Shown in pieces: positions 8,119-36,950 of a stretch of DNA of 64,000 nt. The notes under the pieces are model-generated. The model made no database searches and was not told where the DNA came from. It saw only the letters and a list, made by a program, of their open reading frames with translations. Numbering within the stretch: position 1 is the stretch's first letter; each line of letters begins with the position of its first letter. The DNA comes from Octopus sinensis. Its lineage: Eukaryota. The translations under genes were made by a program, and so were the position numbers. Location: contig NC_043011.1 in the NCBI RefSeq assembly GCF_006345805.1, positions 63,376,464 to 63,440,463 of the forward strand. Reading direction: 5' to 3'.

Positions 8119-8218
8119 ACGCATAGTCTACTGACTATTGGTGATGGATAGTTTGCTCTGGCTTTATTCTTGCAATACCCATAGGCCAGATTTTCACACA
8201 TTTTTCGATTAACAGCAT
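8119..8218 (-). CDS. P2 exon 2 ((D)AVNRKMCENLAYGYCKNKARANYPSPIVSRLC(V))
   Basis: TCTTTTAG acceptor, GTACGT donor, 100 nt, phase 1 to 2; same size and phase as 36851-36950. Confidence 0.85.
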
Positions 8219-8524
8219 CTAAAAGATTTATTTATTTAATTATTAATAATTAGTGATACATATACTGGGTGTATAATCATTATATTTAAAAATGAATGCT
8301 AAATAAAAGACAAAAATACCGAAGAGTTAATATAGAGCTAAATTCGGATTCCCATGCTCTCACTAGGCAATTATAATATGTATTTCATTAATGATATCAA
8401 TATTGTTCAGCTTCCGTTATAACTTCACATGTGACGATGTGGTACAATTGTTTGGTGATTCTTCACTACAAAATATTTACAATGTGAAAATTTTGTCATA
8501 TTCTTTTATTCTTATATTCCTATA

Positions 8525-8737
8525 GTTCTTTCAGTCATTTGACAGCGGCCATGCTGGGGCACCGGGTTTAGTCGAAGAAATCGACCACAGGTCTCTTTCG
8601 CAAAACCGCTATGTTACGGGGATTTAAACACACCACCATCCGTTCTCAAGCGATAGAAGGGGACAAATACAAGCACACAAACGAACACACTCACACACAC
8701 ACATGTACACACACACAAACACAGACACACACGCACA

Positions 8738-8778
<41 letters not shown>

Positions 8779-8826
8779 TATATACAACGGGCTTGTTTCC
8801 GACTACCAAATTCCCTCACAAGGCTT
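8525..8826 (-). mobile_element. SINE fragment
   Basis: CAGTCATTTGACAGCGGCCATGCTGGGGCACC tail motif with internal (CA)/(TA) repeats. Confidence 0.6.
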
Positions 8827-9129
8827 ATATATTTATACACACATGTCCACACGCAAACATACGCATATGTTCATGAGCGGTCATAATATAAGGGTCAGTA
8901 CGAACAGGAGAATTGAGATATTTATTATAGAAGGTGAACGAAACGATAAGACTAAATATTTTACACATAATTAGACATGTCTAATATCTATCTTTGGTGA
9001 AAATATCAAATGAATGGAGTGCATATTTAATAAGTTATGGGGAAATAAACTAATAATCTCTCAAACTGCAATGGCCAAAACTTAAGTGTCACTAAGAAAA
9101 AACAAAGAAAAAGGAACAAAACAAAAATG

Positions 9130-9900
9130 AAACCTGTGCTATTCATATTTTTACCTCCCTTTACTATCAATGACCACTTGACTTCATTTACAACATGACT
9201 GAATTAATTTATTGCAAAATGATGGAGTAGTATTGTTCCCTTCATGTTGCAATAATTCCCAGAGTTTATGTTAGGTGTTTGAATTTCTCATTCGCGCCCC
9301 ATTTTCAGTAATCTTCCAAACGTATTCTATCGGATTGATAACGTGATTTTAAGGTGAATAGTCCATGAGATCAACCCCTTTATCAATCAAAAACTCATTG
9401 ACTCTCTTCAAAATATGACGGGGTGCGTTGTCCTGCACGAAAACATGAGGCTGAACAGACGAAGTTCGGAGATGTTGAAGGGAATGATGTCTAAGAATAT
9501 GCTTGTAGATTTCAGAATTGACAGTCTCTTGCCGGCGAATAAGTGAACAAGGACCAGCAACAGACATAACTTCCTAAAAAACTGTTTTGCGCGGTACGTT
9601 GGCATCGGACGTGGAGCTAAACTCACGGAATATCTCAGCTGCACTCTTAAAGCTATCATTCAGGGACATTGCATGCATAGAACGATCCTGTCTTGGTGAA
9701 CATTTATGAGGTCTTCGGACTTCGGGGTTTAGCATCTAATGATCTTGTTCACTTAAAATGAGGTACAGTTCGTTGCACAACACTTCTAGATATTCCTAAA
9801 GCAGTTTCAATCACACAATTATACTTGCCCTCTTGGTGAAAGCATGCAATATTTTGGCTTTACAATACATGACAGTGGTCGTCTCTTACATGCCGCCAAG
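9130..9900 (-). pseudogene. Tc1-type DDE transposase relic
   Basis: LGISRSVVQRTV HTH region; FVQDNAPRH and YSP*NHVINPIEYVWK motifs; stops and an internal deletion. Confidence 0.8.
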
Positions 9901-10260
9901 TTGACTGTTGAATGCTCTAAAAATGAAATTTCTTGAGCAGTAACTATTAGCCTCTTTACAGACATCTGAACAATAAATACCTGGATTAGGAGATCAGTTT
10001 TTGTAAATAGTTTTGACTCAAGACAATTGAAAAACTTGCAAGACGCAACGAAAATTTTACGAAAATAAAAATAACAAATAAGTGGAAATTTTACCGGTGA
10101 GTGTGTTACATTAAAAGGCACAAAACAAAAATGACTCTCCCCAGACATAACAGGATATGCTTCCACACACGAACTCATATAAAGAATCTTGAAAACCAAA
10201 TCCAAAAATGATATATTATTATTATTATTATTATTAATATTATTATTATTATTATTATTA

Positions 10261-10333
<73 letters not shown>

Positions 10334-10447
10334 GTTATTATTATTATTATTATGATTATTAATACTATTATTATTATTATTATTATCATTATTACTATTA
10401 TTATTATTATTAATACTATTCTTCTTCTTCTTATTATTATTATTACT

Positions 10448-10497
<50 letters not shown>

Positions 10498-10559
10498 CAT
10501 CATCATCATTATTATGATACACAACAGAGTGGACAGTGGGAAATGAAAAATTCCTCACA

Positions 10560-12560
10560 TCGGGCTACAATATGTAACCTCAAATGCAAAGAAACATCAT
10601 AAATATCCTAGCTGTCCACAATAACAATTCTCTGGTGGTGTACATAACTGGGTGTTATGCTTTTTTATTCTACTTATCATTACATATCTGTAGAGAGAGT
10701 CTCCATTGAATCTATATCTACTGGAATAATTTTACCCGCACTTTCCATAGGCTCTCTCATTGCTAGGTCTATCACTAAATCAGGCTTTTTAGCTTCTATT
10801 ATGCTGTTAGGCTAAATGTTAGACCCACAACTTCGTATATTTCCCGCTTTCTAGTGCATTCCTGCGTTCCTGTTCATACCATTTATTAGTATGTTCGAAT
10901 CTTAGCTCTTGACATTACTGCATGTGGATTACTCTTCGTAGTTTGCCGTGTCTTTCTTTGTATTAGTTCGGTGTCATCATCCTACAGTCACTTACTCTAT
11001 GAGTAACGCTTTCCTCTTTCGATTTGTATAACCTATACTGGGAATCTATTTGGTTTTGTCTATCTTGGCTTTATCCAATTAGTCCTTAATGATTCGTCTT
11101 ATGCTGCTACTAACAAAATCTCTATATCATTTTCCTACCTTCATTTCCGCATTCCAATCAGATAAATTTTGTTCTTTCTTTCGGTTTCTTACTTCGTTTG
11201 TATGTTCCTGTGTCTTGCTGTGACTCTACCAACTATTAGCAAACTTTTTCATATACCTACATGGGGGTCTTTATCTACTTTAGCTAACTACACGCAGTCT
11301 GCTATTGATATTAACACTCTTCCGCCTTCCTTTCTAGGTAAGTATAACCTTGCAAATTCTGCCCTTGGGTGGAGTATTCCATTCATATTCAATTCCTTCC
11401 TACTTCTTCATTTCAGCATTTCTAAATCTGATTTTGCCCATTCTACAAATGATGTTGGTTATCTAAGAAACGATGCTGCATAAATATTTAAAGCGTTCTT
11501 TAAATTCGAACCCTTTAGATTTGACTTCATTAGCTCCTCTAGCATTTTCATGTACTCCTTGATTTTCATTACTAAAGATTCTAATACTCCTAGATACTTA
11601 TAACTCTATCTTCCTCCAAGGATTTTAATGCCTGTCCAACCGGTGATTGGATGCCTTCCCTATTGACTAACTGTCCCCTATCTCATGACTAATATTGCAC
11701 ACATCTCTGTTCCATCTTTATAGGTTTCTTGAAAATTCTAACATGTTTCATCCCTACTAAAACATTTCGATCATCCATGTACACCAAATAGTTAATTTTT
11801 TACTTACTATTTCTGAACCCTCCCTTTGCATTTGTCAATACTAAATTGAATGGCATCAAACATAAGACAAATATTAAAAGGGATAACGAGTTTCATTGGA
11901 AAATTCCTATATTCACATTAACTTTCCCTAAGACAAATAATATCTGAGTAGAAATCTATTTTGCATTTCTTCATACTAAAGATAAATAATTCGCTCATGA
12001 TGTCTGCAATTCTCAGAATATTCTGTTACCCATGGGTGTGGGACCATACCATAAGACTTCATATAATATATCCCTGTTATTGTCACAGCTTATTTTGTAG
12101 ATTTTACTTTATTTAGAACTGGTTTATGTATGTATAATAGATCATGCATCCCTCTAGCTTCTGGCGGTAAATTCTGATTGTCAAGTTGCACGTAAAGGCC
12201 TTCTGAAAGCATTTGTATTAACATTGTCCACACCAATATTAAGCAAATTCTTGGCGCCTAATTGCTAACTATATTACTCTTACATTTATATTTCATAATG
12301 TGTATTGTTCTCCCTCCATTCATCCAGTCTTGTATTATTGCTCCATGAAGGCTATCCTGAAGTTATCCTCTCAGCCTCCGATGTAAACTACTATAATTCA
12401 TTAACCAGTAAACTTAAAGTGAATCTGGACCATGGCCCTTCCATTGCGGCATATATCGCAACTATTTATTCTTGGACCTGACTCAAAAGAAGATTGGAAC
12501 GCAGTCTTTCCCAGCATGTTAATGTAGGCCAAGTGTTTTCTCATTACTGCTTGAAACTCA
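10560..12560 (-). mobile_element. Old, heavily decayed R4-like LINE
   Basis: NIGIFQ*NSLSLLIFVLCLMP and INYLVYMDD remnants near 11750-11930; boundaries approximate. Confidence 0.55.
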
Positions 12561-12662: not shown

Positions 12663-12716
<54 letters not shown>

Positions 12717-13120
12717 TTTTTTTTTTCTTCATTCAAATTTTCTTCCATTTCTTGCCGAGTGTCTTCCCGACTCCTAGGGCAAAGAAACTCATAGTGTATA
12801 TTGGTAGGCCATTAAACCAAACTCAGGAGTTCGTTCATTTTTTTTTTTAAAGTTAAATTAAAATACATGAGCAGCAACAGTTCTCACATCGACAATGCTC
12901 TTCTCAATACGTGTGATGTACCAGTTAAGACAATCTTTTGCACTTCTTGCAGGGATGGTAAGCCAGGGATCATTCTCAAATGAGCTTGTCAAACTCTTTC
13001 GCTGAGATATTATGATCACAGGGGATGCTCATGTCGATCAATAAGCAAACTTTATTGTTTTGGTCTTTCACAACAATATCTGGTTTATTGGCCTTGATGG
13101 TTCGGTCTGTATGTACTGGA
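12717..13120 (-). mobile_element. R4/Dong-like LINE family A, 3' fragment with internal deletion
   Basis: VHTDRTIKANKPDIVVKD...DMSIPCDHNISAKEFDKL; shared family A 3' UTR. Confidence 0.9.
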
Positions 13121-13172
<52 letters not shown>

Positions 13173-13195
13173 GCATTATTATTATTATTATTATT

Positions 13196-13224
<29 letters not shown>

Positions 13225-13226
<2 letters not shown>

Positions 13227-14585
13227 TGGTAAAGACGATAATAAACTTGAAGGCCTATTGCGCACTGTGAAAACATTCAGTGATGACATCGGGATGGAGT
13301 TTGGGCTTGAGAAGTGTGCCAAGGCCACTTTCCAGAAAGGGAAAGTGAAGACCACAAATTCAGTCGTGTTAGATGTTGACACAGTCATAACAAAGCTTGA
13401 GCAAGAACAAACATACACATATTTAGGGATAAATGAAGGCCCTGATATTCAGCATGCAAGCATGAAAGAGAAGATCAGGAAGGAATGTTATAGGAGGGTT
13501 CGTGCAGTCCTGAAATCTGAATTAAATGCACGTAACAAGGTGTTAGCTATAAATTTCTTAGTAGATCCAGTTGTTACTTATAGCTACAATGTGTTGAACT
13601 GGAATATGAGTGAAGTAAAGAATATAGATAGGAAAATACGCAACCTGCTGAGTTGTAATAGGATGCACCACCCAAAGGCCACGAAAAATCTCACGGGCAA
13701 TTGGCTGATAGGTGGGAGGAGATACCTCTGCACGGCAAATATGTGGCCCGTAGCAAACAAGCTGATTTTGACCAGATGCAATCCTATCAGTGGCTACGTA
13801 GTTCAGGGCTAAAAGCAGAGAGCGAAGGTTTCATCCTGGTTGCTCAAGATCAAAGCTTATTAACCCGGAACTACCAGGCCAATGTGATGAAAAATGGAGG
13901 AGACCCAAAATGCCGATTCTGCAACGACATGATTGAAACAGCGGACCACCTAAGCTCTGGATGTAAAGTCTTAGCACCAGTGGAGTATGAATTAAGACAT
14001 GACAGAGTTGGCCAATATCTACACTGAGACTGTAACTGAAGGAGAAAATGTAACCATTCTGTGGGACTCTCCAGTACATACAGACAGAACCATCAAAGCC
14101 AATAAACCGGATATTGCTGTGAAAGACCAAAACAATAAAGTTTGCTTATTGATTGACATGAGCATCCCCTGTGATCATAATATCTCGGCGAAAGAGTTTG
14201 ACAAGCTCAGAAAATATTAAGACCTACTCATTGAAATTGAGAAAATGTAGCATCTCAAGGCGGTTACAATACCAGTGATCGTAGGAGCACTAGGAATGAT
14301 CAAGAAGGGAACCGAAAATTATATGAGAATGAATCCTGGCTTACCATCCCTGCAAGAAGTGCAAAATATTGTCTTAACTGGTACATCACACGTATTGAGA
14401 CGAGCATTGTCGATGTGAGAAGTATTACTACCCATGTATTTTAATTTAACTTTAAAAAAAAAAATGAACGAACTCGTGAGTTTAGTTTAATGGCCTACCA
14501 ATGTATACTGAGTTTCTTTTCCCTAGGAGTCGGGAAGACACTCGGCAAGAAATGGATGCAAATTTGAAAGAAGAGGAAAAGAATA
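13225..14585 (+). mobile_element. R4/Dong-like LINE family A, 5'-truncated with deletions
   Basis: RT C-terminus (FGLEKCAK), CRFC...HLSSGC, RHDRVG, PD-D endonuclease motif, 3' UTR. Confidence 0.9.
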
Positions 14586-14624
14586 AAATAATAATAACAA
14601 CAACAACAATAATAATAATAGTAA

Positions 14625-15175
14625 TGAGACAGCTCTGCATAACATCAAAGTGACACAGGGTTAAAATATACTAGGCCCAGCATAACCATTATCGCTACTC
14701 ATCTGAGAAGTGAACACTTGGGACATGCATCACAAACATATGTGCGCGACATAGTGATCTCACATCAAGATACACAGCACGTCACTTTGTAGGAAAAGCC
14801 CTGTCAAAATATTACTTCGCCTGAGTAGCCCATACCCCTCAAAAATGTCTTTGAATAAAGGTTGTTTAAGGATGTTGAACGAAACACTAATGATTTCAGA
14901 GGTGAAATATACAAACCCGAAAGAACTCTTCTCAACATATGGCTATGATTTTCCCCCACTACATTTCCTCCTGACTAGAGTTGCACATATCGTCAGCCAT
15001 TAAGAGATATGCTCAACATGTTCAGGTAAAAAAAACTGTCAAGAATATCTGTTGTATTGAGAAGAATATTTAATATAGACCACTTTTTATAGCAAAATAA
15101 AAAAAGCTACGTGATAACACCTCCAATGAGATAAGAAGTCACGAGAGCCACTGTGTGGTATGCATCGGGTAATTT
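14625..15175 (-). mobile_element. TAA-tailed retroposon, diverged copy
   Basis: Colinear with the 33900 and 55131 copies. Confidence 0.75.
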
Positions 15176-15340
15176 CTTCTTCGTCTTCTTCTTCTTCTTC
15201 TTCTTCTTCTTCTTCTTCTTCTTCTTCTTCTTCTTCTTCTTCTTCTTCTTCTTCTTCTTCTTCTTCTTCTTCTTCTTCTTCTTCTTCTTCTTCTTCTTCT
15301 TCATCATCATCATCTTCTTCTTCTTCTTCTTCTTCTTCTT
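15176..15340. repeat. (TTC)n microsatellite
   Basis: Direct reading. Confidence 0.95.
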
Positions 15341-15406
15341 ATTATTATTATTATTGTTGTTGTTGTTATTATTATTATTATTAATAATATTATTACTATT
15401 ATTATT

Positions 15407-15882
15407 TTGAGTGAGAGAGCAGTTCATGCTATCAAAGTGACACTGGGGTAAAATATACGAAGCCCAATATACCCATCATGACTACCCGTCTGATAAGGGT
15501 ACACCAGGCACATGCATCACAACCATATGTGCGCGACATGGCGATCTCATATCAAGATAAACAGCACATGACCTTGCAGGTGGGGCCCAGTTAGAATTTT
15601 CTTCAGGTTGAGTAGCCCATCCCGCTCAAACGGTCGCTGAATAAGGGTTGTTTAAGGATGTTGAAAAAACCACCCATGTTTCCAGAGGTGAATTATTCAA
15701 ACCCCAAAGAATCCCTCTCAACACATGGCTATGATGCTCCCCCACTACTTCTGCTCGTGATCAAAGATGCAGATATCGTCAGCCACTAAGGGACATGCTC
15801 AACTGATTAAGGTCAAACAACTGACAAGCAAATCTGTGGTATTGAGCAGAATATTTGCTGTAGCCCATCTTTTATACCAAGA
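15407..15882 (-). mobile_element. TAA-tailed retroposon
   Basis: Near-identical to the 33900, 54582 and 55131 copies. Confidence 0.85.
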
Positions 15883-15920
15883 TTATTATTATTATTAATG
15901 TTATTATTATTATTATTATT

Positions 15921-17968
15921 GTCATTTACTTTTAATCTGCATGTTTGATGCAATCACTTCCCGGGGCACACCCAGCGCCCTAGGGCAAGTGAAGGTTAAG
16001 AGTTGTTGAAATATAGCTGAAAGCTTGCGGAGGGGAAGTAGAGAAATATCTCCATGTAATACAACACAAACATTTCCATTGATAGGGCTTTTCTAAGGAT
16101 GTGGGCAGTACAATCTTTTGGATTACCTTGCACAATCTTTTGGATTACCTTGAGACATGGTTCTCCAGGGATATTGTCTAGGTGTTTCTGACATTCCTTT
16201 TTTATAATACCTAGGGCACCTACAATAACAGGAACAGTTTTTGTTTTAAGATTCCACATCTTTTGTATTTCGATTTCCAGGTCCTTATATTTACTAAGTT
16301 TGTCATATTCCTTTACAGATGTATTTTTATCAGTGGGGACGCTTACTCTATTAGTCTGCAGGTATTTTCTTCCCTGTCTTTAACAATTATGTCTGGTCGA
16401 TTAGCCTTGAGCGTTCTGTCAGTGTTGACTGGAAAATCCCAGAGGATGGTGACATCCTTACCTTCAACAACTGGCTGAGGATGGTGTTCATACCAGTTAG
16501 CAGGGGTGCCAAATTTGTAGTGTTTACATATCTTCCAATGTATATACTATCCTACCCTATCGTGGCGATTTTTGTATTCGTTTGATGTCAGCACAGGACA
16601 TCTCAAAACGAAATGATCTATTGTTTCGTCAAATGTGTCGCAGAATCTGCATTTAGGGTCAGTACCGTTTCGGAGAACGTTAGCCTGGTAGTTTCTGGTA
16701 AACAAGCTTTGATCTTGTGCTGCCAGTATGAAGCCTTCAGTCTCTGCTTTTAATCCTGAACTCTTCAGCCACTGATGGGTTGTTGCTTGGTCTACATCAG
16801 CATTTTGGCTTCGTAGAATATATTGTCTATGCAGGGGCTTCTGGCTCCACCGCCTCTCAATTTGATTCTGCCTGTCCTTTTTTGCAGTCTGCTTGATTCG
16901 CTTTGCTTTCTTGGTAGCAGTGGTTTCCGTCTCTTCATCTGATTCAAGGTTAATGTCTAGTTTCCTTTCGAACTTATAAGCCTCTTTGACAATAGAATGC
17001 AGCTTTTTGCTGCTTTCGTGTTCGCACACAAGTCGCAGCATCCTGTTCTTTGTACTAGATAGATACCTGTTCATACCTACAGTAGAGGTCTTATAGCACA
17101 GCTTTATTTGCCTCATTTCTCTCCCCCCGCTGCTTCTAGGTAGGTACAGGCGGTCTACATCTGCCTTAGGGTGGTGCATGCTCTTGGATGTCAGTAATTT
17201 TCTTGTCTTCCTGTCCAAGCGTTGGAGTTCCGTAAGGTTCCAGTTAATGATGTTAAAAATGTACTGGACTACTGGAAGCGCCAGGGTGTTAATGGCCTCA
17301 ATGCAATTTTTGGAGTTGAGTTCAGTCTTCAGTACAAGCCTTATTCTCCTATAGTATGCTTTTCTTATTTTTTCCTTCATAGTAGCATGATGTATACCAT
17401 CTCCTTCGTTGATTCCTAGGTATTTGTAACTTTCTTGTGGGTCAAGTTCCTTGATGGTAGTGTCAATATATAATTTAACAGAAGCTGTTTGCCTGAGCTT
17501 GCCTCTTACAAAAGTTGCTTTAGCACACTTATCAAGGCCAAAATCCATTCCGATATCGTTGCTAAACTCTTTAACAGTTGTTAGCAGCCCTTCTAGCTCT
17601 TGGTCATTCCTGGCAAACAGCTTTAGGTTGTTCATATAGAAGAGGTGGTTTATTGACTTACTAAAAACTTTGTACCCATATCCGGTACTATCCAATTCGT
17701 TTGAGAGTGGGATCAGTGCCATGCAAAAAAAGTAATGGAGAGAGGGCGTCACATTGAAAGATGCCTCGTTTGATGTTGATGCTGTTGGACTGGCTCATCC
17801 CATTACTATGGCTTAGAAAGAGACGTGTGTTCCACATGGTCATGCTATTCTCTAAGAGTTTTGAGACGACAGGAGAGATCTTTTATATCCGAAGGGCCTT
17901 CAGTATCCATTTATGTGGGACACTGTCATAGGCTTTCATGTAGTCTATACATGCCATACTCAGGGTTT
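15921..17968 (-). mobile_element. R4/Dong-like LINE family C, 5'-truncated
   Basis: IDYMKAYDSVPH, 401-aa ORF 16547-17752, CRFC...RHDRVG, RLE region; 3' UTR shared with 54101. Confidence 0.9.
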
Positions 17969-18076
17969 TATTATTATTACTATTATTATTATTATTGCTG
18001 TCATCATCATTATTATTAATATTATTATTATTATTATTATAATTATTATTATTATTATCATTAATATTATTATTAT

Positions 18077-20167
18077 TTTTTTTTTTTCTTCTTTCAAATT
18101 TGCATCCATTTCTTGCCGAGTGTCTTCCCGACTCCTAGGGAAAAGAAACTCATAGTATACATTGGTAGGCCATTAAACCAAACTCAGTAGTTCGTTCATT
18201 TTTTTTTTCTTTTTTGTTTAAAAAGTTAAATTTAAATTAAAATACATGAGCAGCAACAGTTCTCACATCGACAATGCTCTTCTCAATACGTGTGATGAAC
18301 CAGTTAAGACAATCTGTTGCACTTCTTGCAGGGATGGTAAGCCAGGGATCATTCTCATATAATTTTCGGTTCCCTTCTTGATCGTTCCTAGTGCTCCTAC
18401 GATTACTGGTATTGTAACCGCCTTGAGATGCCACATTTTCCCAATTTCAATGAGTAGGTCTTTATATTTTCTGAGCTTGTCAAACTCTTTCGCTGAGATA
18501 TTATGATCACAGGGGATGCTCATGTCGATCAATAAGCAAACATTATTGTTTTGGTCTTTCACAACAATATCTGGTTTATTGGCCTTGATAGTTCGGTCTG
18601 TATGTACTGGAAAGTCCCACAGAATGGTTACATTTTCTCCTTCCGTTACAGCCTCAGGGTGGTGATTATACCACTTGTCGGAAGTTTTGATATTGTAATG
18701 CCGACTTATTAGCCAGTGGAGATATTGGCCAACTCTTTCATGTCTTAATTTATACTCCACTGGTGCTAAGACTTTACATCCAGAGCTTAGGTGGTCCGCT
18801 GTTTCAATCATGTCGTTGCAGAATCGGCATTTTGGGTCTCCTCCATTTTTCAGCACATTGGCCTGGTAGTTCCGGGTTAATAGGCTTGATCTTGAGCAGC
18901 CAGGATGAAACCTTCGCTCTCTGCTTTTAGCCCTGAGCTCCGTAGCCACTGATGGGTTTGCTTCTGGTCAACATCAGCTTGTTTGCTGCGGGTCACATAT
19001 TTGCCGTGCAGAGTTTTCTCCTCCCACCTATCAGCCAATTGCTCGTGCGCTTTTTTCATTGCTATTATTTTCACCTTCTTTGCAACAATAGTTGCCGTAC
19101 TTCCCTCGGGTTGTTCAGTTTGGGTATCGTGCACGAGATCAATAGCAAATTTTTTGCTTTTCTTTATGATAGAATGAAGCTTCTTTCGTCTCTCGTGATT
19201 TTCCACGAGCTTTATCATCCAGTCATTCGTTATTTCGAGATATTTGGCCAGTCCAATTGTGGTTGTTTTGTAAGCTAGTTCAAATTGGATAAGGCCTCGA
19301 CCTCCTTGGGCTCTGGGAAGGTAATGGCGATCTACGTCTGCCTTTGGGTGGTGCATCCTATTACAACTCAGCAGCTTGCGTATTTTTCTCTCTATTCTCT
19401 TTACTTCGCTCATATTCCAGTTCAACACATTGTAGCTATAAGTAACAACTGGAACTGCTAAGGAATTTATAGCTAAAACCTTGTTACGTGCATTTAGTTC
19501 AGATTTCAGGACTGCACGAACTCTCCTATAACATTCCTTCCTGATTTTCTCTTTCATGCTTGCATGCTGAATACCAGAGCCTTCATTTATCCATAAATAT
19601 TTGTATGTTTGTTCTTGCTCAAGCTTTGTTATGACTGTGTCAACATCTAATACGATTGAACTTGTGGTCTTCACTTTCCCTTTCTGGAAAGTGGCCTTGG
19701 CACACTTCTCAAGTCCAAACTCCATTCCGATGTCATCGCTGAATGCTTTCACGGTGCGCAATAGGCCTTCAAGTTCATTATTGTCTTTACCATAATGTTT
19801 TAAGTCATCCATATAAAATAGATGACTTATTTTTTAATTGGCAATTTTATACCCATACCCTGTTCTGTTTAATTCACTTGTAAGGGGTATTAGGGCTATG
19901 CAGAATATTAAAGGTGAAAGTGAGTCACCTTGAAAAATTCCACAGTTGATGTTTATATTTTCTGAGGCAAGTACTCCATTAGAGTGGTATAATTGGAGAT
20001 TCGTATTCCACAACGACATATTGTGCTTCAGGAAGTTTGAAATCACAGGGGAAATTTTGAAGATGTCCAGCGATCTCAAGATCCATGGATGCGGTACACT
20101 GTCGAAGGCCTTTTTGTAGTCAATCGATGCGGTGATGAGATTTCTGCGCTTGTGACAGTTCTCAAGG

Positions 20168-20169
<2 letters not shown>
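18077..20169 (-). mobile_element. R4/Dong-like LINE family A, 5'-truncated
   Basis: IDYKKAFDSVPH, GIFQGDSLSP, YMDDLK, CCHC, RLE; one stop (~19834) and one frameshift (~18885). Confidence 0.92.
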
Positions 20170-20238
<69 letters not shown>

Positions 20239-20809
20239 CATTATTATTATTATTGTTATCATCATCATTATTATTAATATTATTATTATTAGTAGTAGTA
20301 GTATTTATATGCATGTTGCTGTTATTTGGTGTTTTAAAGTGTGAAGGATAGCGTCAGTAGCTCTTGAAGCGACCGTAGTTGTGGATTAGTTCTTAAAGCA
20401 CTCTGGATTGCTTTTTCTTTTGGACATTTCTGTGGATGTTAACCCGGATTCACTTTACATTTAATACTCTAAGTATATTATATTAAATCACCTCGGTATA
20501 TACAATCATATCTTTTTCATATATGCGTTTATTCTTTATACACCTTTTTCCAGCATATGTGAAAATATATGTATATTAGTATAGGTTCGGGATTTGAGCG
20601 CGGTACCTTAACGTGTATTTATACGGTACGGTGTGAATGTATGGGTTCGATTTGAAGTTTTTTAAAAACTTATGTTGATTAATTGTTAACCACAAATGCA
20701 TACTTACATCCATCCATCCGTCCATCCGTCCATCCATCCGTCCATCCATCCGTCCATCCATCCATCCATACATGCATGCATGCATGCATGCATGCATACG
20801 TACATACAT

Positions 20810-21075: not shown

Positions 21076-21372
21076 ACTCTCCTCCCATCTAACTTCCTCC
21101 CCGACTCCTACTTCTCTTCACTCCTACATCTTTTCACCCCTACTCCCTTTCCCTCTTCTCCCTTACTCTCTTTTTCTCTCCCCTCCTTCTCTCTTCCCTC
21201 TTTCTCTCTTCCTCTCTTCTCTCTTTCTCTCTTCTCTCTTCTCTCTTACTATCTTTCTCTCTCCTGTCTTATTCTCTTTCTCTTTTCTCTCTTACTCTTT
21301 CACCCTTTCTTTCTCTCATTTCTCTTCTGTATTTACACAACACAAAAAAATTATTTCAATATTGCAACTTAC

Positions 21373-21409
21373 CTACAAGTAGAATAGAAAGGAAGAATAA
21401 AATTTTCAT
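21373..21409 (-). CDS. P2 exon 1 (signal peptide MKILFFLSILLV)
   Basis: ATG at 21409, 37 nt, G|GTAAGT; phase 1 joins exon 8119-8218 as ...LLVDAVN. Confidence 0.8.
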
Positions 21410-21920
21410 GGCTTTTCTATGACACGTTAAAACAAACGAATGGTGGTACGGCAATCAACCATGTTGTTTTGTTACATGTAATGGCATTCAGTGTAACATA
21501 TGCGAGGCACCAGTAAAACAAAACAACGCAATTCAATTAAGTCTGTCATATTAAATTACAAAGCGGCAATATTTCTTTCACCAGAACATTTAATTGTCGA
21601 ATAACGATTCATACGTGGATACAGAAATTAAACTGACAATTGAATATTCATTTCTCCATTTAGATAATAATATGACCTATAGTCAAAAAACTGAAGCATA
21701 ATTGATTTGTGGAATGTTTATCTCTTATTCTTCCATTTGTGTTTCATATTGTTGTGCAACCATTCTGGGATACTATACTGAAGGATTTACTAAAGGAATA
21801 AACTTCTAGACCTGTACTGAGTCTATTCTACTGTCTCTTGAACTATATACTCTACTTCCCCAAATCTCCTGCCGATCAGAAGCATCATATTTTAAACGAA
21901 AAATTCAGTCACTTTTGCAA
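21410..21920 (-). promoter_or_regulatory. Conserved upstream block of P2 with the TATA position mutated
   Basis: AACAAC where the paralogs have TATAA(C/T/A). Confidence 0.6.
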
Positions 21921-21949
21921 ATATTATTATTATTATTTTCCTTCCTTTC

Positions 21950-22012
21950 TTTTCTTCTTTCAAATTTGCTTCAAGTTCATAGGCCTTCAAGTTCATTATC
22001 GTCTTTACCATA
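21950..22012 (-). mobile_element. R4 family A micro-fragment
   Basis: YGKDDNELEGL joined directly to the 3' terminus GCAAATTTGAAAGAAG. Confidence 0.7.
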
Positions 22013-22081
<69 letters not shown>

Positions 22082-22130
22082 TTTATCATTATTATTATTA
22101 TTATTATTATTATAATTATTATTATCATAA

Positions 22131-22209
<79 letters not shown>

Positions 22210-24764: not shown

Positions 24765-25278
24765 ATATAATTAGTGAATGGAAGAAATGGAGTTGAACGA
24801 AGATTGTACAGAATTCCTTTTACTGCATTCTACACATGTTTCAAAGGCCACAATTTTCCAAATTCTGATTAAATAAGGATACCATATTGCAGCTTTCTCT
24901 TCAGGAAAAACCAGGAATTACGTTGTCAGAACAAAACAAAACAGAGGCGCTGCAAAGCAATTCGAACGAAGACGCTGCTTAAGAGCCCATGGGTAAAATG
25001 TTTATCAATGTACGTTGGTGGGGGCCGACAAAGGGTCCGTTGGAATAAATCCAGGTCAGGCCGCGGTCAAATCTAGTAGGTGAGGAATTAATGAGAACAA
25101 GGGGTGTGGAGATGTTCTGTGTGACCAAAACTAATGTTCTGAAAATTTTAAGAATACAGGGTGTATTTTTTAGGGGCGAGACAATACCTACCTAAAAGCA
25201 TGTATGTGTATACTAACCTATGTGTGCGCCGCCGTTTGTTGGCGAGGGGCGCTAGATAATGAGCACTGCTGAAAAAAG
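24765..25278 (-). repeat. Left inverted terminal repeat (pLTR), 514 bp
   Basis: Reverse complement of 27801-28314; about 6 mismatches counted by eye. Confidence 0.95.
24812..24919 (-). ncRNA. Type I hammerhead motif, left pLTR copy
   Basis: Mirror of 28160-28267. Confidence 0.65.
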
Positions 25279-25281: not shown

Positions 25282-27559
25282 AATTATAGAACAACTAATT
25301 GGAACACACTGAGAAAAGTAAACTTGGAGATTAAGGAAATAATGTTTAAATAAGGAATTCAAATGAGAACGCAGCCGCTTAGCCCTAAACAACCTAGATT
25401 CATAGTGAAGGACCACAAACCGAATTTCTACACCAACCCAGCGTTAAGACTCATATGCCCTGCTAGTTCCGATATCGGGACCATCAGTAAGTATATTTTA
25501 GATAAATATATCCCTGGTTTAGTTAATAAGCTGAAGCTTAGCCTCTGGGCTAACTCCTCGCAGGTCATGAAGTGGTTCTCTTCCATCCCTAATAAGAACT
25601 GTACTAGGTTTATTCAGTTTGATATTGCTAGCTTCTACCCCTCGGTTAACCCTAGTGTACTAAATAAGGCCCTGTGGCATGCTCACAACAAGGCAGGCCT
25701 CACTAGAGAAGAAATTGATATTATTTTAGTTGCCAGAAAATCATTTATAAAGTTTGAAAATAAGTTGTGGATTCGTAAAGATACTCCCAACGAATTCGAT
25801 GTGCCTATGAGTAGTTCGGATAGCGCGCAGATAGCCGATTTGGTCGGAATCTATATTCTCTACGAATTATCCGACCAATTCCCGGACATCGCGGGCGGCC
25901 TGTATCGTGACGATTGTCTGTTTTACCTGCAAAACACCACGAACATAATCGTACAGAAAACTAAAAATAGGTTAGCTAGGTTCTTTAATAGAATGGGCAT
26001 GAATATAGTTTTTGATAATGAACTCACTAAGGCTAATTTCCTAGACGTCACACTAAACCTCCATAGTGATTCATACTGCCCTTACCATAAGCCTTCCACT
26101 AATTTAAAGTATGTCAGTGTCTTCTCCAATCATGCCAAAACTGTAACACAATTTGGTTAAAAACATCTCTCTAAGATTGTCTAATTTGTCCGCTAGTGTC
26201 GACATTTTTATGCAGAAAGCGGAATTTTATAACGCCGCACTATCCAAAGCCGGTTATAGGCAGAAGGTAGTATATATTGATCCAGCCCTTCCGATGCCAC
26301 CATTCGGTCATCAGGATAGGGCCGTCTATAATAACATTAATAATTTAAGTAGTGATGGGAGCGGGAGGAGTACTGGAGCAGGTACTTCTGGATTGAATTT
26401 AGGGAACATAGATAATTTACGTTTCGGGGGAGGTCATACTAAACCAAAACCTTTTATTCAACCTAGAATCACCCACCCTAATGTCAGAGCTAGCTCCCCG
26501 ACCCATCACAAAAATAGGAATAAACATATCTGGTTTGTAATTCCCTTTGGTAAGCAGATTAGAACTAATCTTCCCCTCCTGTTTCGCCAAGCCATTGCCA
26601 GTAACTTTCCCAGAAATTCCAAATATTACTCCACGGTTAATTCACATAAAGTTAGGATAGCTTTCTCCAACACAAAAAACCTTTCCCACATAATCGCCTC
26701 CCATAATAATAGGCTGCTTATTAAGACCCTATCACCATTGTCCGGAGTCGCAGCTCCGTCTAATTCCAGTTTAACGCGCAGTAGGAATAATAATAGTAGT
26801 AATAATAATAAAAGAGCCAGTACAGTGACTGGTAATCTCAGTACCAACCAGGGAGTAAATAATAGGATTAACGATAGAAGAAATGGTGATGTTAATAACG
26901 TTAGTAATGGCAATAGGGAGGAGAGCGCAGTTCGGGTCATTAATGTAGAGAGTCCTAATAGCAACTTTAGCAACGTTTCCGACAATAGTAGGTCCACGGA
27001 TACTAGCAATCACAGCGGTCTCAGTCATAGGGAATACACAGGGAATAGTCCGTTAATTAGTATTGATAATGAGGAGTATAATGTAGTAGGCGACCGCAGT
27101 TCTCACAGTCAATATAGTAACAGAAACGCAGTATTAATATCAGAAGCTAATCCCAATAGAATAATGTTCTTGTCTAGTAACTCCAAGATCAGAAATGCCA
27201 TTTACCAATGCAATGTTTACACGGATTCGGATGTCTACTCGTATGTCGGGCCCTCATCGTCAAAATTGGCCTTGAGAATATCGAACCATTTCGCAACTTT
27301 TCGCAACGTTAATAAATACCAAGCTACAGGACTTAGCAAACTTATCTGGCGTTTGAAGAACGCGAATTCAGTTTTTAGGCTGGAATGGTCGATTTTGTCG
27401 GTGGCCCTCCCGTTTGATAGGGGCAGAAGGATGTGTAATATTTGTAACTCTGAGCTTTTCCACATATTGTTCGCCAGAGGCCGTTTGGTAAACGGGCTTT
27501 TACAGACGGCTTTTCGATGTCCCCATTGGCGGCGTCATACTTATCTTACATATAAATGA
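25282..27559 (+). pseudogene. PLE RT plus GIY-YIG ORF, disrupted
   Basis: In-frame TAA at 25351-25353; frameshift near 26150 between track ORFs 25363-26160 and 26153-27559. Confidence 0.85.
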
Positions 27560-27800: not shown

Positions 27801-28314
27801 CTTTTTTCAGCAGTGCTCATTATCTAGCGCCCCTCGCCAACAAACGGCGGCGCACACATAGGCTAGTATACACATACATGCTTTTAGGTAGGTATTGTCT
27901 CGCCCCTAAAAAATACACCCTGTATTCTTAAAATTTTCAGAACATTAGTTTTGGTCACACAGAACATCTCCACACCCCTTGTTCTCATTAATTCCTCACC
28001 TACTAGATTTGACCGCGGCCTGACCTGGATTTATTCCAACGGACCCTTTGTCGGCCCCCACCAACGTACATTGATAAACATTTTACCCATGGGCTCTTAA
28101 GTAGCGTCTTCGTTCGAATTGCTTTGCTGCGCCTCTGTTTTGTTTTGTTCTGACAACGTAATTCCTGTTTTTTCCTGAAGAGAAAGCTGCAATATGGTAT
28201 CCTTATTTAATCAGAATTTGGAAAATTGTGGCCTTTGAAACATGTGTAGAATGTAATAAAAGGAATTCTGTACAATCTTCGTTCAACTCCATTTCTTCCA
28301 TTCACTAATTATAT
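27801..28314 (+). repeat. Right terminal repeat (pLTR), 514 bp
   Basis: Pairs with 24765-25278. Confidence 0.95.
28160..28267 (+). ncRNA. Type I hammerhead ribozyme motif
   Basis: TTC-CTGAAGA (28175-81), 12-bp stem II with one mismatch, GAAA (28237-40), C-ATGT-GTA then GAA; distal AATTCCT/AGGAATT extends stem I. Confidence 0.7.
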
Positions 28315-29339: not shown

Positions 29340-29413
<74 letters not shown>

Positions 29414-30707
29414 CATATATATACATATATATATACACACATACTGGATTTTTCTTAGTTTACACTCACAAACATCTTTGGAATCGGGACCATAATTTCC
29501 ATGCAGTAGGACTGTAATTGCAACCGTGTTGTTCAAATGCATATTGTCCCTACGCAATAACATCCGCATATGTTTAAAACATTTCGTATTGCCATCATTT
29601 CATACCTTTCGAGTCTGTCACTAAAAGCCTTCCATGAAATTTTCTTCAGTTTTTCCCACTTTGGTTACATGGTAATTTGCGCCATAAGCGATTCTAGCAG
29701 TATTAATGTGTTGGGCAACATAGTCGTACAGATAGGAGATTGTGGCATTATATCATGCACACTGAAAATATATTCGTAGAATGTTACATAAATAACATCG
29801 ATTTTTTGAGCTTCATATAGAAGTAAAATTTTATGTCAGAGGAAAATATTTGTGAAAGACGTCAACATCATAAATCGGTCAACCTCCAGATATTCTTGAT
29901 TTTAATGCTTTTCACACAAACCTAGGATCTAACAAGTTCACTTTAGGGCTGCAAACAATAACGTCTAGCAATCTCCTTGCATCGACTTTGGAGAAGAAAT
30001 GAAAATTTAATGCAGTCGTTCTTGCTACAAATTTGTTGGCCAACATTTAAAAGATTAACGTTCGATTGTTACTCATTTCGTGACACTTCCACTCCCTTAC
30101 AGCTGAGATAGAATAAGAGGAAAATTTCTTTATATATCATTGATATTATTTAATAATGAGGAAGTTCAATTCTCAGGTTCAGAATATTCGTCACATTTCA
30201 CCAGACCTTGACAAAAATGTGTTGAAAAGTGTGTTTTCAGGAGAGGTATTTTTTGGTCCATTGAAACAAACCTGTAATTAGAAACGTAATATTTAAAAGA
30301 AAAGTAACTGATATCAATGAGCTTTCTCGTATTTGAACCCTCACATCTTGAATATAGTTGTTTGTTTTATTACCGCCCCATATCATTCGCCACTTGAAAA
30401 TAAATACGGGGGCTGCTTTCTTCTACAGAACCCTTAAAAGGGGGTACTTCAGCATGAACGCAGTCCTACGAACGTAACAAGCAAATATGAGAAAGGAACG
30501 CACATCTACATTAGTGTGCTAAATTTGCTGTACAGTTATTAAATATCACTCGCATTTTATATAATTTACTTAGTTTATATCGCAACAAGATTGTATTGGG
30601 AATTCAGCGATGTCATATATACATAATAATCAATGGTAAAATAGAGACATTTATGATAAAATTTCAATAATTACCGAATGTTAAACTCCTTCCATCTGCT
30701 TAATTTT

Positions 30708-32489: not shown

Positions 32490-33050
32490 TTATTTTTGCT
32501 GCGGTGGAAACGGTTTACAAGTAATTGTGTTCGACCCTATGGAAACATTTCGATTGCTTCAAATTAGTGAGCGCTCCCGCCATGCTAGTTTCTTTATCTA
32601 TCCTCTCTATGATGTAGCACGTGAGGCGAACTTTGTCGTGGATAGTAATATTTGGGGTGGTGCATGTCTGCGCTTCACTAACCAACTTATTGTTCATAAG
32701 TGGCAACCTCTTGGCTAACACCGTTTATACTTAGAATCTATATTCAGTAGAGTTATAGATCTAAACTTACCAAGTCTGTCCCGCTTAATCGGACCATTCT
32801 TTAACATCACCACCACTACATGGCTTATAGCACTGGGATTTCACCTATTCTGTTGCCAGTTTTGCTTGTCGTCAGCCAAGAGTATATCCATCAAGTCTGG
32901 CACATGGAAATAAACCTGGAAGGCTAGATCATCGCGCCCCAGAGGCTTCTTTGTTACCCAGCCTGTCGTCGCATCCCACAAGTCGTTATCAGCATTTCGT
33001 AGAATAGCGCATACCTAACTGAGAGGCGCGCCATGCTACTGAGATTCGAG
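32490..33050 (-). mobile_element. L1/Tx1-type RT fragment in P3 intron 2
   Basis: LAKRLPL...EAQTC...GALTNLKQSKCFHRVEH; paralog of 6140-7090. Confidence 0.75.
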
Positions 33051-33094
33051 ATGAAATTTCAAACCTGGTTTCTCATCCCTAAGGTATGATTCGA

Positions 33095-33138
<44 letters not shown>

Positions 33139-33140
<2 letters not shown>

Positions 33141-34455
33141 GAGTGAGAGAGCAGCGCATGCCATCAAAGTGAAACTGGGGTAAAATATACGAAGCCCAAT
33201 ATACCCATCATAACTACCAGTCTGATAAGGGTACACTAGGCACATGCATCACAACCATATGTGCGCGAAATGGTGATCTCATATCAAGATAAACAGCGCA
33301 TGACCTTGCGGGTGGGGCCTAGTTAGAATTTTCTTCTGGTCGAGTAGCCCACCTCGCTCAAAAGGTCACTGGATAAGGGTTGTTTAAGGATGTTGAGCAA
33401 AACACCTATGTTTCCAGAGGTGAATTATCCAAACACCAAAGAATTCCTCACAACACATGGCTATGATGCTCCCCCATTACTTCTGCTCGTGATCAGAGAT
33501 GCACGTATCGTCAGCCACTAAGGGACATGTTCAACTCGTAAAGGTTAAACAACTGACAAGCAAATCTGTGGTATTGAGCAGAATATTTGTTGTAGCCCAT
33601 CTTTTATACCAGCACAAAACAGTGTACATGGTAACACTTCCCAATCAGTAAAGATCAGAAGCCGCGAGAGCTACTGCATGATATTGCATTATTATAATTA
33701 ATATTATTATTATTATTATTATTGATAGAGAGAGCAGTTCATGCCATCAAAGTGACACTGGGGTAAAATATACAAAGCCCAATATACCCATCATGACTAC
33801 TCGTCTGATAAGGGTACACCAGGAACATGCATCACAACCATATTATTATTATTAGTATTATTAATATTCAGTAGTTTTCTTTTATTATTATTATTATTAT
33901 TGAGTGAGAGAGCAGTGCATGCCATCAAAGTGACACTGGGGTAAAATATACGAAGCCCAATATACCCATCATGACTACCCGTCTGATAAAGGTACACCAG
34001 GCACATGCATCACAACCATATGTGCGCGACATGGTGATCTCATATCAAGATAAACAGCACATGACCTTGCAGGTGGGGCCCAGTTAGAATTTTCTTCAGA
34101 TTGAGTAGCCCATCCCGCTCAAACGGTCCCTGAATAAGGGTTGTTTAAGGATGTTGAAAGAACCACCCATGTTTCCAGAGGTGAACTATTCAAACCCCAA
34201 AGAATCCCTCTCAACACATGGCTATGATGCTCCCCCACTACTTCTGCTCGTGATCAGAGATGCACATATTGTCAGCCACGAAGGGACATGCTCAACTGGT
34301 TAAGGTCAAACAACTGACAAGCAAATCTGTGGTATTGAGCAGAATATTTGCTGTAGCCCATCTTTTATACCAAGACAAAACAATGTACATGATAACACTT
34401 CCAATCAGTTAAGATCAGAAGCCATGAGAGCCACTGCCTGGTACTGCATCAGGGC

Positions 34456-34459
<4 letters not shown>
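33139..34459 (-). mobile_element. Three head-to-tail TAA-tailed retroposon copies (33139-33690, 33723-33838 partial, 33900-34459)
   Basis: Repeated TTGAGTGAGAGAGCAG...GGGCATTT unit separated by TTA tracts. Confidence 0.85.
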
Positions 34460-34526
<67 letters not shown>

Positions 34527-34545
34527 TATTATCATTATATTATTA

Positions 34546-34638
<93 letters not shown>

Positions 34639-35052
34639 TTCTGTAGTTTTATTTTTATAGCGTGCTTTCACTTCACTACCGAGCGCAGCTCTGTGTGCCT
34701 TGGGTAAGTGCTGTGATTTGTTGTGATGCTCTGATGTTTATTGTATGGAAAGTGTTCTGCTTAGGTTGTGTGCAGTGCCTAGTAGTGCAATTTTCTGTAT
34801 GTTATATGTGTTTGTAAGTCCTGGTGTTTTTGTTATGTATTTGTCTGAATAATTTTTTATCATGCCTAATGCACCTACTATGATAGGAATTGTTTCTGTT
34901 TTCAGATTCCACATTCTAGTTACCTCTATTTCCAGGTCTTTGTATTTTGAGAGTTTCTCCATTTCTTTTAGAGACACGTTGTCATCTGCCGGTATTGATA
35001 CATCAATTAGAAAGTATTTTTTTCTTCATGATCTCTGACAACTATATCTGGT
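34639..35052 (-). mobile_element. R4 family B 3' fragment
   Basis: KEMEKLSKYKDLEIEVTRMWNLK. Confidence 0.88.
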
Positions 35053-35056
35053 TACT

Positions 35057-35131
<75 letters not shown>

Positions 35132-35147
35132 GTTGTTGTTGTTATTA

Positions 35148-35230
<83 letters not shown>

Positions 35231-35232
<2 letters not shown>

Positions 35233-36640
35233 GTGGCTGCATCAATGGTTACTTCAGATATTGTTGGGTAGAAATAAAGAGAAGAAACAGGACGTAAAGA
35301 ACCATACTGGCGGAGACGAATATTTGAGAAGCAAAAACAGTTAAAAAGACATTTCGAATAAGTTGACAGATTGAGAAGAGAGGAATTGGAGTTCCAAAAT
35401 ATAAGAATAATGCTGGCAATTTCTTAGAGAACAAAAGATAAAGGTTACGATGTGATATTGGAGGAACTGAAACAGAGGATTGTTTCAATCAAGACAAAAC
35501 TGGAAATATTTGACAACAGAAATAAATCAGTCAGCGAAAAGAGTTGGACGCAAATAAGATGAAAGTCTTTGAGGAATTAGATGGGAAATGAGACGTAACA
35601 AATATACCTTTTGCAGAGGAAAGGAGGGCATTGTGGAGAAGGATGTGGGACCGAATTGTAGAAGATAAGGATGAAAGGGATTGGTTGTATGAAATGCAAG
35701 ATAGTTTAAGAAATATAGAAGTCCAAGAAGACATAAAGACAACTACAGAAATGATGAATTAACTGTTAATTAATTTCTGAAATTGGAAGATCCCAGGATC
35801 GGATGGTGCCCAAAGGTATTGGGTGAAGGAATTAAGAGGGCTGCATCAAAGATAGCACAATACCTAGATGAGTGCTTGCAGGAAGGCGCAGTACCCAGAT
35901 GAATGACAACGGGAAAGACATTGTCATGTGCTAAGGAGCCTGAAAAAAGAAACTTTGCATCGAACAGTATTCTAATAACATATTTTCCGCTAATTGGAAA
36001 GTAATTTTAGGTACTTTGGCCACATACCTGGAGGAAGTCAGGCCCTTACGCATTGAACAAAAAGAGTGCCGAAAAAATAACCAGGGAGTGAAGGATCAGC
36101 TCTTGATTGATAATCTAATTATCAGGAATTGCGAGAGAAGACATATAAACCTGAGCATGGCATAGGTTGACTATCGCAAAACATAAGATATGGTGCCACA
36201 CTCCTAGATTATAAGAACGATGGAAATGTATGGATTAGCAGAGAATATGAGAAGTCTTATATAGGATATCATGAAATATTAGAAAACTGAATTGATAGCA
36301 GAGAAGCAGTGACCAGGAGATGTGAAAATCAAGACAGGTATCTTCCAGGTGGACATTGTGTGACTTCTGATATTCAGGCCGGGAATGAGACTCTTGAGTG
36401 AAATACCACAGAAAACAATGTTGGGGTGTGATCTGGGAAGGGGTAAGGCAAAGGGAAACCTACTGTTATTCATGGACAACCTGAAGTTCTTCACTGAAGC
36501 AGATCTGGACAGTCTATTCCAGTCTGTGTGGATTTTCCCTAATTACATAAAGATAGAGTGGACTCTCAAAATCTCTTACGATGGTGATGAGATAATGTAT
36601 GCTTACCAGGACACAAGAAATATGGTTGACAATTAGTGAA
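35231..36640 (+). mobile_element. Decayed R4-like RT N-terminal region (family E)
   Basis: EPYWRRRI, EELKQRI and KDQLLID-like remnants; many stops. Confidence 0.7.
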
Positions 36641-36850
36641 ATGATGAAGGTATTTCAACCTCAATCTAGGGGCTTTTTCTGCAAAAACTAGCTCTCAATG
36701 CGGGTACCCAGCTAGTAACAAACAATTAAACAATGAGAACAAAATTTCGACAATTTGAGACTTAGAAATTTCAAAGACCTTCAGGAACTCCAAAACCTGC
36801 GATTTACCGCGAGTAACAACAACAACTACAATAATACTAATAATACGTAC

Positions 36851-36950
36851 AGGCATGTTGCACTAAGTTTTGCGTATGGCGGGATATTTCTATAATTACC
36901 CTTGCAAAAACTACCGGCCAATCTATCGCACTCGGATTGCGCAGCAGCAC
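36851..36950 (-). CDS. P3 exon 2 ((G)AAAQSECDRLAGSFCKGNYRNIPPYAKLSATC(L))
   Basis: TCTTTTAG acceptor, GTACGT donor, 100 nt, phase 1 to 2. Confidence 0.85.

Follow-up and report, generated by a model that had tools for sequence, protein, structure and literature searches.

Two related putative genes, which we call P2 and P3, lie on the minus strand of a 64,000-nt stretch of the Octopus sinensis genome (assembly GCF_006345805.1, contig NC_043011.1, positions 63,376,464-63,440,463 of the forward strand; hereafter the window), and their exons 2 and 3, which together encode a domain with six cysteines, have diverged further from each other than the introns and flanking DNA around them. Such an inverted pattern had been proposed for the region extending from position 8119, the last base of exon 2 of P2, to position 36950, the first base of exon 2 of P3, and had been interpreted as a signature of accelerated evolution (the original prediction). 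Our analysis supports this interpretation within the limits set by two sequences: the nonsynonymous distance between the two genes (dN) lies above the distance between their introns in 99.9% of bootstrap replicates. In our judgement, diversifying evolution of a lineage-restricted family of secreted peptides is the best explanation of the locus, and a fairly probable one. The family is new and apparently unannotated; the evolutionary pattern itself is well known.

The gene models were read from the sequence only, and the use of exons 1 and 4 is what we infer from it. The parts of the two genes to which the text refers are the following:

21373-21409, minus strand: putative exon 1 of P2, coding part, MKILFFLSILLV plus 1 nt; donor TAG/gtaagt, phase 1; from the alignment of four copies
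8219-8388, minus strand: last 170 nt of intron 1 of P2, the conserved stretch adjoining the exon 2 acceptor; from the alignment to P3
8119-8218, minus strand: exon 2 of P2, 100 nt, (D)AVNRKMCENLAYGYCKNKARANYPSPIVSRLC(V), three cysteines; from splice sites and comparison with P3
5055-5143, minus strand: exon 3 of P2, 89 nt, RWIYYYDCLLEVRVDCAHYFHNRFTAKCI, three cysteines; donor TAC/gtgagt, phase 1
4048-4088, minus strand: candidate exon 4 of P2, coding part (RLVKSDEYSEYEQ, stop), tentative; conserved acceptor, ATTAAA at 4036
45072-45108, minus strand: putative exon 1 of P3, coding part, MKTLFFLCLLFA plus 1 nt (predicted signal peptide); donor CAG/gtaagt, phase 1; from the signal-exon scan
36951-37115, minus strand: last 165 nt of intron 1 of P3, the conserved stretch at the exon 2 acceptor, 88.5% identical to 8219-8388 of P2
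36851-36950, minus strand: exon 2 of P3, 100 nt, phase 1 to 2, (G)AAAQSECDRLAGSFCKGNYRNIPPYAKLSATC(L), three cysteines; from splice sites and comparison with P2
31475-31565, minus strand: exon 3 of P3, 91 nt, RLINYYFCLRDIRSDCAFTFHKTLTDQCLL, three cysteines; the only GT donor is TTG/gtaatt, phase 0
30198-30206, minus strand: candidate exon 4 of P3, coding part (VW, stop), tentative; conserved acceptor and block, followed by ATTAAA at 30154

Divergence of exons and introns between P2 and P3

The counts on which the original prediction was based were reproduced in our recount. Exon 2 is 100 nt long in both genes and identical at 55 of the 100 positions, exon 3 is identical at 57 of 89 nt, and the encoded proteins share 24 of 62 residues, where about 24 of 61 had been given. 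The six cysteines, which were said to be kept, are all in register in the arrangement C-x8-C-x17-C-x8-C-x7-C-x11-C and align without gaps. The length and splice sites of exon 2 are indeed retained as well, each copy being flanked by the same acceptor (cttttag/) and the same donor (/gtacgtatt) and encoding 33 residues, three of them cysteines. For the part of intron 1 next to the exon 2 acceptor an identity of roughly 85-90% had been estimated by eye; we measured 146 of 165 nt (88.5%, or 85.8% by BLAST, which counts gaps), and the final 21 aligned bases before exon 2 are identical without exception (21/21). However, conservation in this 165-nt stretch exceeds that of the other introns (p = 3e-4), and a contrast drawn against it alone is therefore overstated.

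Identity falls in a step exactly at the splice sites. In consecutive 25-nt bins of exon 2, identical positions number 13, 16, 12 and 14 of 25, with 15 of 18 in the adjoining intron bin, and exon 3 is 64% identical, while its flanks reach 76-87%. As a non-coding reference we used six colinear blocks, comprising the 5' flank, the alignable ends of introns 1 to 3 and the 3' region, whose Jukes-Cantor distances range from 0.125 to 0.31. Exons 2 and 3 taken together are identical at 112 of 189 positions (59.3%) as compared with 2591 of 3328 (77.9%) in the reference (Fisher p = 3.8e-8). None of the 553 gap-free non-coding segments of 100 nt is as low as exon 2, their minimum being 58 identical positions. 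Exon 3 presents a weaker case, with 15 of the 553 segments equally low (which places it in the lowest 3%) and one patch deep in an intron reaching the same level. The contrast between exons and introns is confirmed; its statistical support is solid in exon 2 and moderate in exon 3.

Substitution rates and competing explanations

Codon substitutions were analysed by the Nei-Gojobori method with bootstrapping, over 62 codons of two sequences, P2 and P3. The values obtained were 0.59 for dN (bootstrap 0.41-0.81), 0.54 for the synonymous distance (dS; 0.31-0.95) and 1.07 for their ratio (omega; 0.59-2.0). dN is about twice the intron distance of 0.27-0.31 and drops to 0.31 or below in 0.1% of the bootstrap replicates, and 23 of the 62 codons differ at two or three positions. 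Omega amounts to 1.7 in exon 2 alone and to 1.46 when the cysteine codons are dropped. A ratio well below 1 accompanied by saturated dS, which had been named beforehand as evidence to the contrary, is not what we see, omega being as given above and dS being unsaturated.

Retention of the coding capacity was assessed by neutral simulation, in which P2 was mutated at random in 50,000 trials. At the observed divergence the frame remained open in 3% of the trials, all six cysteines were kept in 0.024%, and both conditions held together in 0 of 50,000 (p < 2e-5); at the intron-level divergence an open frame with six cysteines was found in 0.15% of the trials (0.0015). Both genes have retained the frame and the cysteines against these odds and therefore are not pseudogenes; the scaffold is under constraint. 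The pattern is accordingly one of a scaffold that stays fixed while residues outside it are replaced at about twice the neutral rate, known in the literature as accelerated evolution.

According to the explanation we favour, the locus would be an array of units of ~19-23 kb, in which each gene would possess a short, conserved signal-peptide exon and two exons (100 and ~90 nt) for a basic domain that is ~60 residues long, contains six invariant cysteines and is predicted to form a three-helix bundle with three disulfides. After duplication, purifying selection would have held the scaffold, comprising the cysteines, ~18 other residues, the exon length, the splice sites and the phases, and surface residues would have been replaced about twice as fast as the neutral intron DNA. 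The excess of replacements would reflect diversifying (positive) selection on the mature peptide, and we propose a likeness to venom peptides, host-defence peptides and pheromones, which face changing targets.

Several observations weigh against this explanation. Exon 3 alone exhibits an omega of 0.56, and since exons 2 and 3 are available from only two sequences, omega is not significantly greater than 1 and positive selection is unproven. Moreover, dS too is roughly double the intron distance, an outcome not predicted by selection on the protein alone; dS drops to 0.31 or below in 2.4% of the bootstrap replicates, an excess that is borderline because there are only ~40 synonymous sites, and dS is of similar size in codons whose amino acid is conserved (0.58) and in those whose amino acid has changed (0.53). 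The identity of the non-coding DNA is heterogeneous (chi-square p = 2e-4) and highest beside the exons (88.5%, 86.6% and 84%). The donors of exon 3 differ in phase (phase 1 in P2, phase 0 in P3), which renders the C-terminal tails uncertain, and the searches described below found no homologue in support of the putative gene models.

The raised dS and the uneven non-coding identity, with its peaks beside the exons, keep alive an alternative that we regard as unlikely. On this view the duplication is as old as the divergence of the exons indicates, and past gene conversion or unequal crossing-over has made the non-coding DNA of the copies partly uniform again, converted exons having been selected out, or conversion having halted at the divergent exons, with the result that the introns look young rather than the exons fast. 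The tandem arrangement of the genes in the same orientation is in keeping with such a history. On the other hand, recent conversion tracts, which had been suggested as a possible cause of the similarity of the introns, were not seen: the best 100-nt non-coding segment is 90% identical, and the longest identical non-coding run, at 27 nt, does not exceed the chance expectation of a uniform neutral model (95th percentile 29 nt). Besides, the four copies of exon 1 and its 5' flank in the window are approximately equidistant in pairwise comparison (74.6-78.5%), adjacent pairs being no closer than the others, and the boundaries of the tracts would need to match four splice sites. Even if homogenisation did occur, selection for diversity of the exons would still be needed.

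We consider it rather doubtful that the locus represents a previously undescribed fold family in one animal lineage, in which exon-targeted mutation or avoidance of conversion acts on top of selection; a genuine elevation of both the synonymous and the nonsynonymous distance to about twice that of the introns would point past ordinary positive selection.

Relaxed constraint would require the peptide to be neutral outside its cysteine scaffold, with omega close to 1, and the introns to be held back by splicing or regulatory elements. The bootstrap interval of omega includes 1, and the end of intron 1 at the exon 2 acceptor is extra conserved, as noted above. However, neutral exons should equal the divergence of deep introns and flanks (Jukes-Cantor distance 0.27-0.31 over >2 kb) and not double it, constraint over kilobases of AT-rich, transposon-riddled intron is unlikely, and no signal of RNA structure was found in the conserved stretch of intron 1 (z-scores of -0.29 and +0.82). 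We judge this explanation improbable. A scan of the whole window against Rfam gave no match.

Local hypermutation focused on the exons, as once proposed for cone-snail peptides, would lift both dS and dN. It agrees with the twofold dS and its rarity of values at or below 0.31, and perhaps with a transition/transversion ratio that is 0.54 in the exons and 0.88 in the non-coding DNA (Fisher p = 0.055), but with so few synonymous sites the significance of the former is borderline, the estimate of dS is inflated by codons with multiple hits, exon 1 is unaffected, and we know of no mechanism that stops at splice sites; we therefore hold it to be very improbable.

Finally, it is scarcely credible that the copies are domains repeated within a single larger gene, or relics without function: the exon pair of P2 (189 nt) does make a symmetrical module, in phase 1 at both ends, but each copy has its own upstream signal-peptide exon with a start codon, exon 3 of P3 (phase 0) spliced to exon 2 of P2 runs into a stop after 27 codons, and the retained frame and cysteines rule out relics. 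A true relic at 49297-49800 exhibits the decay pattern of the family. A single gene with repeated domains was rejected because of the reading frame and the separate start exons.

Gene models and the surrounding array

Exon 1 was found by scanning the whole window for a methionine followed by a hydrophobic run and a phase-1 GT donor, and exon 3 by a scan for acceptor-led open frames with at least three cysteines. The scan for signal exons picked 45126-45072, with the donor CAG/gtaagt; the start shared by all copies is the second ATG of that open reading frame (ORF). The exon 1 block is present in four copies (2104-3047, 21339-22203, 44913-46446 and, inverted, 62184-64000), each of which contains an ATG, 12 hydrophobic codons, one more base and GTAAGT (GTAA in the fourth copy, at the edge of the window), and whose predicted peptides are MKILFLVCLLFV, MKILFFLSILLV, MKTLFFLCLLFA and MKILLLLGLLLA, respectively. 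The exon ends in phase 1, as needed by exon 2, its donor matches the consensus, and the copies of P2 and P3 are identical at 31 of 37 positions (84%). Joined to exon 2, the products would start with MKILFFLSILLVDA/VNRKMC... and MKTLFFLCLLFAGAAA/QSEC..., in which V-D-A/ and A-A-A/ are plausible cleavage sites with small residues at -1 and -3, as in ordinary signal peptides.

Other candidates for the parts of the genes were considered and rejected. Searches directly upstream of the two copies of exon 2 found no signal peptide, and a search for a shared signal-peptide exon within intron 1 of both genes yielded microsatellite artefacts only. A conserved block at 20324-20690 and 40383-40811, containing a TATAAATA motif and examined as a promoter with exon 1, encodes no signal peptide in any frame and sits within intron 1. 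As exon 3 of P2, the ORF 7301-7134 (SKIRCS...) was discarded, as it has four cysteines, a wrong length and no counterpart in P3.

The difference in length and phase of exon 3 between P2 and P3 is tied to a 6-nt indel (TTATTG). A candidate acceptor of the last exon is conserved ~1 kb downstream of exon 3 (4088 in P2, 30206 in P3), with ATTAAA after it, and exon 3 is probably followed by one short last exon. If both genes use this same exon, their C-terminal tails would be wholly unlike, with 13 residues in P2 (RLVKSDEYSEYEQ) and two in P3 (VW).

P2 and P3 share the minus strand, and one copy of exon 1 is located upstream of exon 2 of each, at 21409-21373 in P2 and at 45108-45072 in P3; the genes therefore form a head-to-tail series whose units measure ~19-23 kb. 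Their first introns (13 kb in P2 and 8 kb in P3) have been enlarged by transposons. The window contains part of a tandem array of small genes for putatively secreted cysteine-rich peptides, with at least four genes and one relic, the remaining members being:

2260-2296, minus strand: putative exon 1 (MKILFLVCLLFV) of another gene of the family, the rest of which (exons 2 and 3) would lie past the left end of the window; from the aligned copies
63960-63996, plus strand: putative exon 1 (MKILLLLGLLLA) of an inverted family member, which leaves the window at its right end; from the aligned copies
49297-49800, plus strand: decayed inverted copy, 72-75% identical to P2, in which the 3' end of intron 1 survives together with the acceptor and ~13 nt of exon 2

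In the relic, a deletion has taken out the remainder of exon 2 together with the beginning of intron 2. Further up intron 1, a fragment of a short interspersed element (SINE) is common to the relic (49297-49330) and P2 (8530-8594) and is absent from P3; this SINE therefore predates the duplications. The SINE at ~8530-8830 may resemble a cephalopod (octopus) SINE, which we offer as a lead only. In the conserved 5' flank of all four copies of exon 1 (21700-21760, 45440-45480), the stretch gtgccccagcatggttgcac resembles the core of the SINEs in the window, and part of the promoter or 5' untranslated region may be derived from an old SINE.

The window is AT-rich animal nuclear DNA (21-41% GC in 2-kb steps), and microsatellites, SINE copies and reverse-transcriptase fragments are abundant throughout. 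A young SINE-like repeat of ~330 nt is present in six copies that are 92-96% identical (7775-8113, 15379-15716, 33110-33448, 33882-34209, 54560-54891 and 55108-55441), one of which is inserted in an (ATT)n tract ~40 nt downstream of the exon 2 donor of P2 and could affect the splicing of this gene. The bulk of the 13-kb intron 1 of P2 is made up of a retrotransposon without long terminal repeats (non-LTR), whose copies (12665-20172, 56163-61901 and 52282-52926) are mutually 94-95% identical. Its matches to RVT_1 and zf-RVT are weak, at or below the Pfam cut-offs; one of its ORFs has a 96% match on the ENA metagenome contig ERZ22666216 and others of 41-70% in many animals. The same intron harbours a remnant of a mariner/Tc1-type transposase (...VQDNAPRH...) at 9349-9567 on the minus strand. 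Between exon 1 of P2 and the 3' end of P3 there is a 3.5-kb element with 514-bp terminal inverted repeats (24765-25278 and 27801-28314, 98.8% identical) and two ORFs, 25363-26160 (265 aa) and 26153-27559 (468 aa), that have no Pfam match; the element probably represents a young, unclassified transposon. A look-up of the exact product of one transposon ORF gave no match. Downstream of exon 3 of P2, a local tandem duplication of ~200 nt (4536-4735 and 4736-4929, 93% identical) is absent from P3.

The predicted peptide and its relation to known families

The predicted mature peptides comprise 62-74 residues, with masses of 7.2-9.0 kDa and isoelectric points of 8.6-9.2. AlphaFold, with the two sequences as its only input, predicted the same three-helix topology for both copies (helices 4-14, 30-42 and 47-61/62), with a mean pLDDT of 85 and 81. 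With two cysteines in each helix region, the models are read most naturally as a helical bundle with three putative disulfides.

Searches for homologues of the peptides were negative. Pfam yielded no family match, the best hit, PF17858 (E = 0.13), being noise with 12.8 bits where the cut-off is 25; a sequence search of the PDB gave no match, and neither model had a fold match in the PDB by Foldseek (best E = 2.5). No match was obtained when 5.8 billion proteins were searched by word index, either for the mature domain or for the full precursors, nor with a HMMER profile against 1.84 billion representatives; relatives as distant as P2 and P3 are from each other would score ~38 bits and miss E = 0.001 in the latter, and absence from the latter library is thus weak evidence. 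Conserved 24-25-mers from the introns and the 5' flank had no matches among JGI metagenome contigs, and a search of the literature for these peptide strings or for cephalopod six-cysteine peptides found nothing specific.

Several known families were considered and rejected. Kunitz, defensin, MgCRP-I and CHH-type families fit neither the spacing of the cysteines nor the predicted helices and are excluded on these grounds. Kunitz/BPTI domains have the spacing C-x8-C-x15-C-x7-C-x12-C-x3-C, which differs from that found here, and there is no Pfam match to them, the models being all-helical. Beta-defensins and big defensins are excluded in the same way, PF17858 remaining under its cut-off and the models having three helices, not a beta-sheet. 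For helical six-cysteine hormones of the CHH/ITP type and the toxins derived from them there is no Pfam match at E up to 10 and no PDB sequence or fold match. Conotoxin superfamilies are rejected as homologues, as no similar signal or mature sequence appeared in the protein, representative or Pfam searches, although a relative as distant as P2 is from P3 would escape the search of the representatives.

If the gene models hold, these would be taxonomically restricted, secreted, disulfide-rich peptides that evolve like toxins, host-defence peptides or pheromones, and such families are a usual source of new bioactive scaffolds. The locus also provides a clean natural case of exons outrunning introns, in which the signal exon, the introns and the mature exons can be compared with a dead copy next to them. 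This phenomenon has been known since the 1990s, and what the present case adds is a new family and exon boundaries of unusual sharpness, but no new principle.

The pattern found here, in which the signal exon is 84% identical and exons 2 and 3 are 59% identical, the cysteine framework is fixed, and exons exceed introns in divergence, recalls several systems. In conotoxin genes the exons differ strongly in substitution rate (PMC3862624). The conotoxin superfamilies of cone snails resemble the octopus genes in their conserved signal exon, hypervariable mature exons, invariant cysteine framework, long introns and many paralogues. They differ in having no sequence similarity to the octopus peptides and in being mostly 10-40 residues long and encoded in one exon, in contrast to a domain of ~60 residues that is spread over two exons and predicted to be all-helical; no propeptide exon is evident in the octopus family.

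The phospholipase A2 (PLA2) isozyme genes of snake venom glands, reportedly described by Nakashima and colleagues in the 1990s, are the classic instance of 'accelerated evolution'. The introns and untranslated regions of these paralogues are more conserved than the coding exons, and the ratio of nonsynonymous to synonymous substitutions (Ka/Ks) is near or above 1, as here; the product, however, is an unrelated vertebrate enzyme of ~120 residues with 14 cysteines. The genes of vertebrate beta-defensins, which are cationic, are clustered in tandem; their signal exon (exon 1) and introns stay conserved, and the six-cysteine mature exon diverges fast once a gene has been duplicated. They share with the octopus family the layout of the cluster, the fast six-cysteine exon and the cationic nature of the peptides, but they are beta-sheet peptides of 35-45 residues, unlike the three helices predicted here.

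MgCRP-I of Mytilus is a taxon-restricted family with six invariant cysteines, tandem expansion and positive selection, and its function has remained unknown despite assays (PMC4558851). Its pre-region is conserved and its mature peptide hypervariable, and the signal exon is followed by a phase-1 intron and then by an exon of ~100 nt (PMC4558851). However, its C-C-CC-C-C array is contained in a single last exon, and there is a propeptide with a dibasic site (PMC4558851). The octopus peptides have the array C-C-C/C-C-C, split 3+3 by an intron, with no CC pair and no obvious propeptide, and for this reason we rejected membership in MgCRP-I. In summary, the octopus genes behave like those of conotoxins, MgCRP-I, snake PLA2 and beta-defensins, but by sequence, cysteine array or predicted fold they are members of none of these families.

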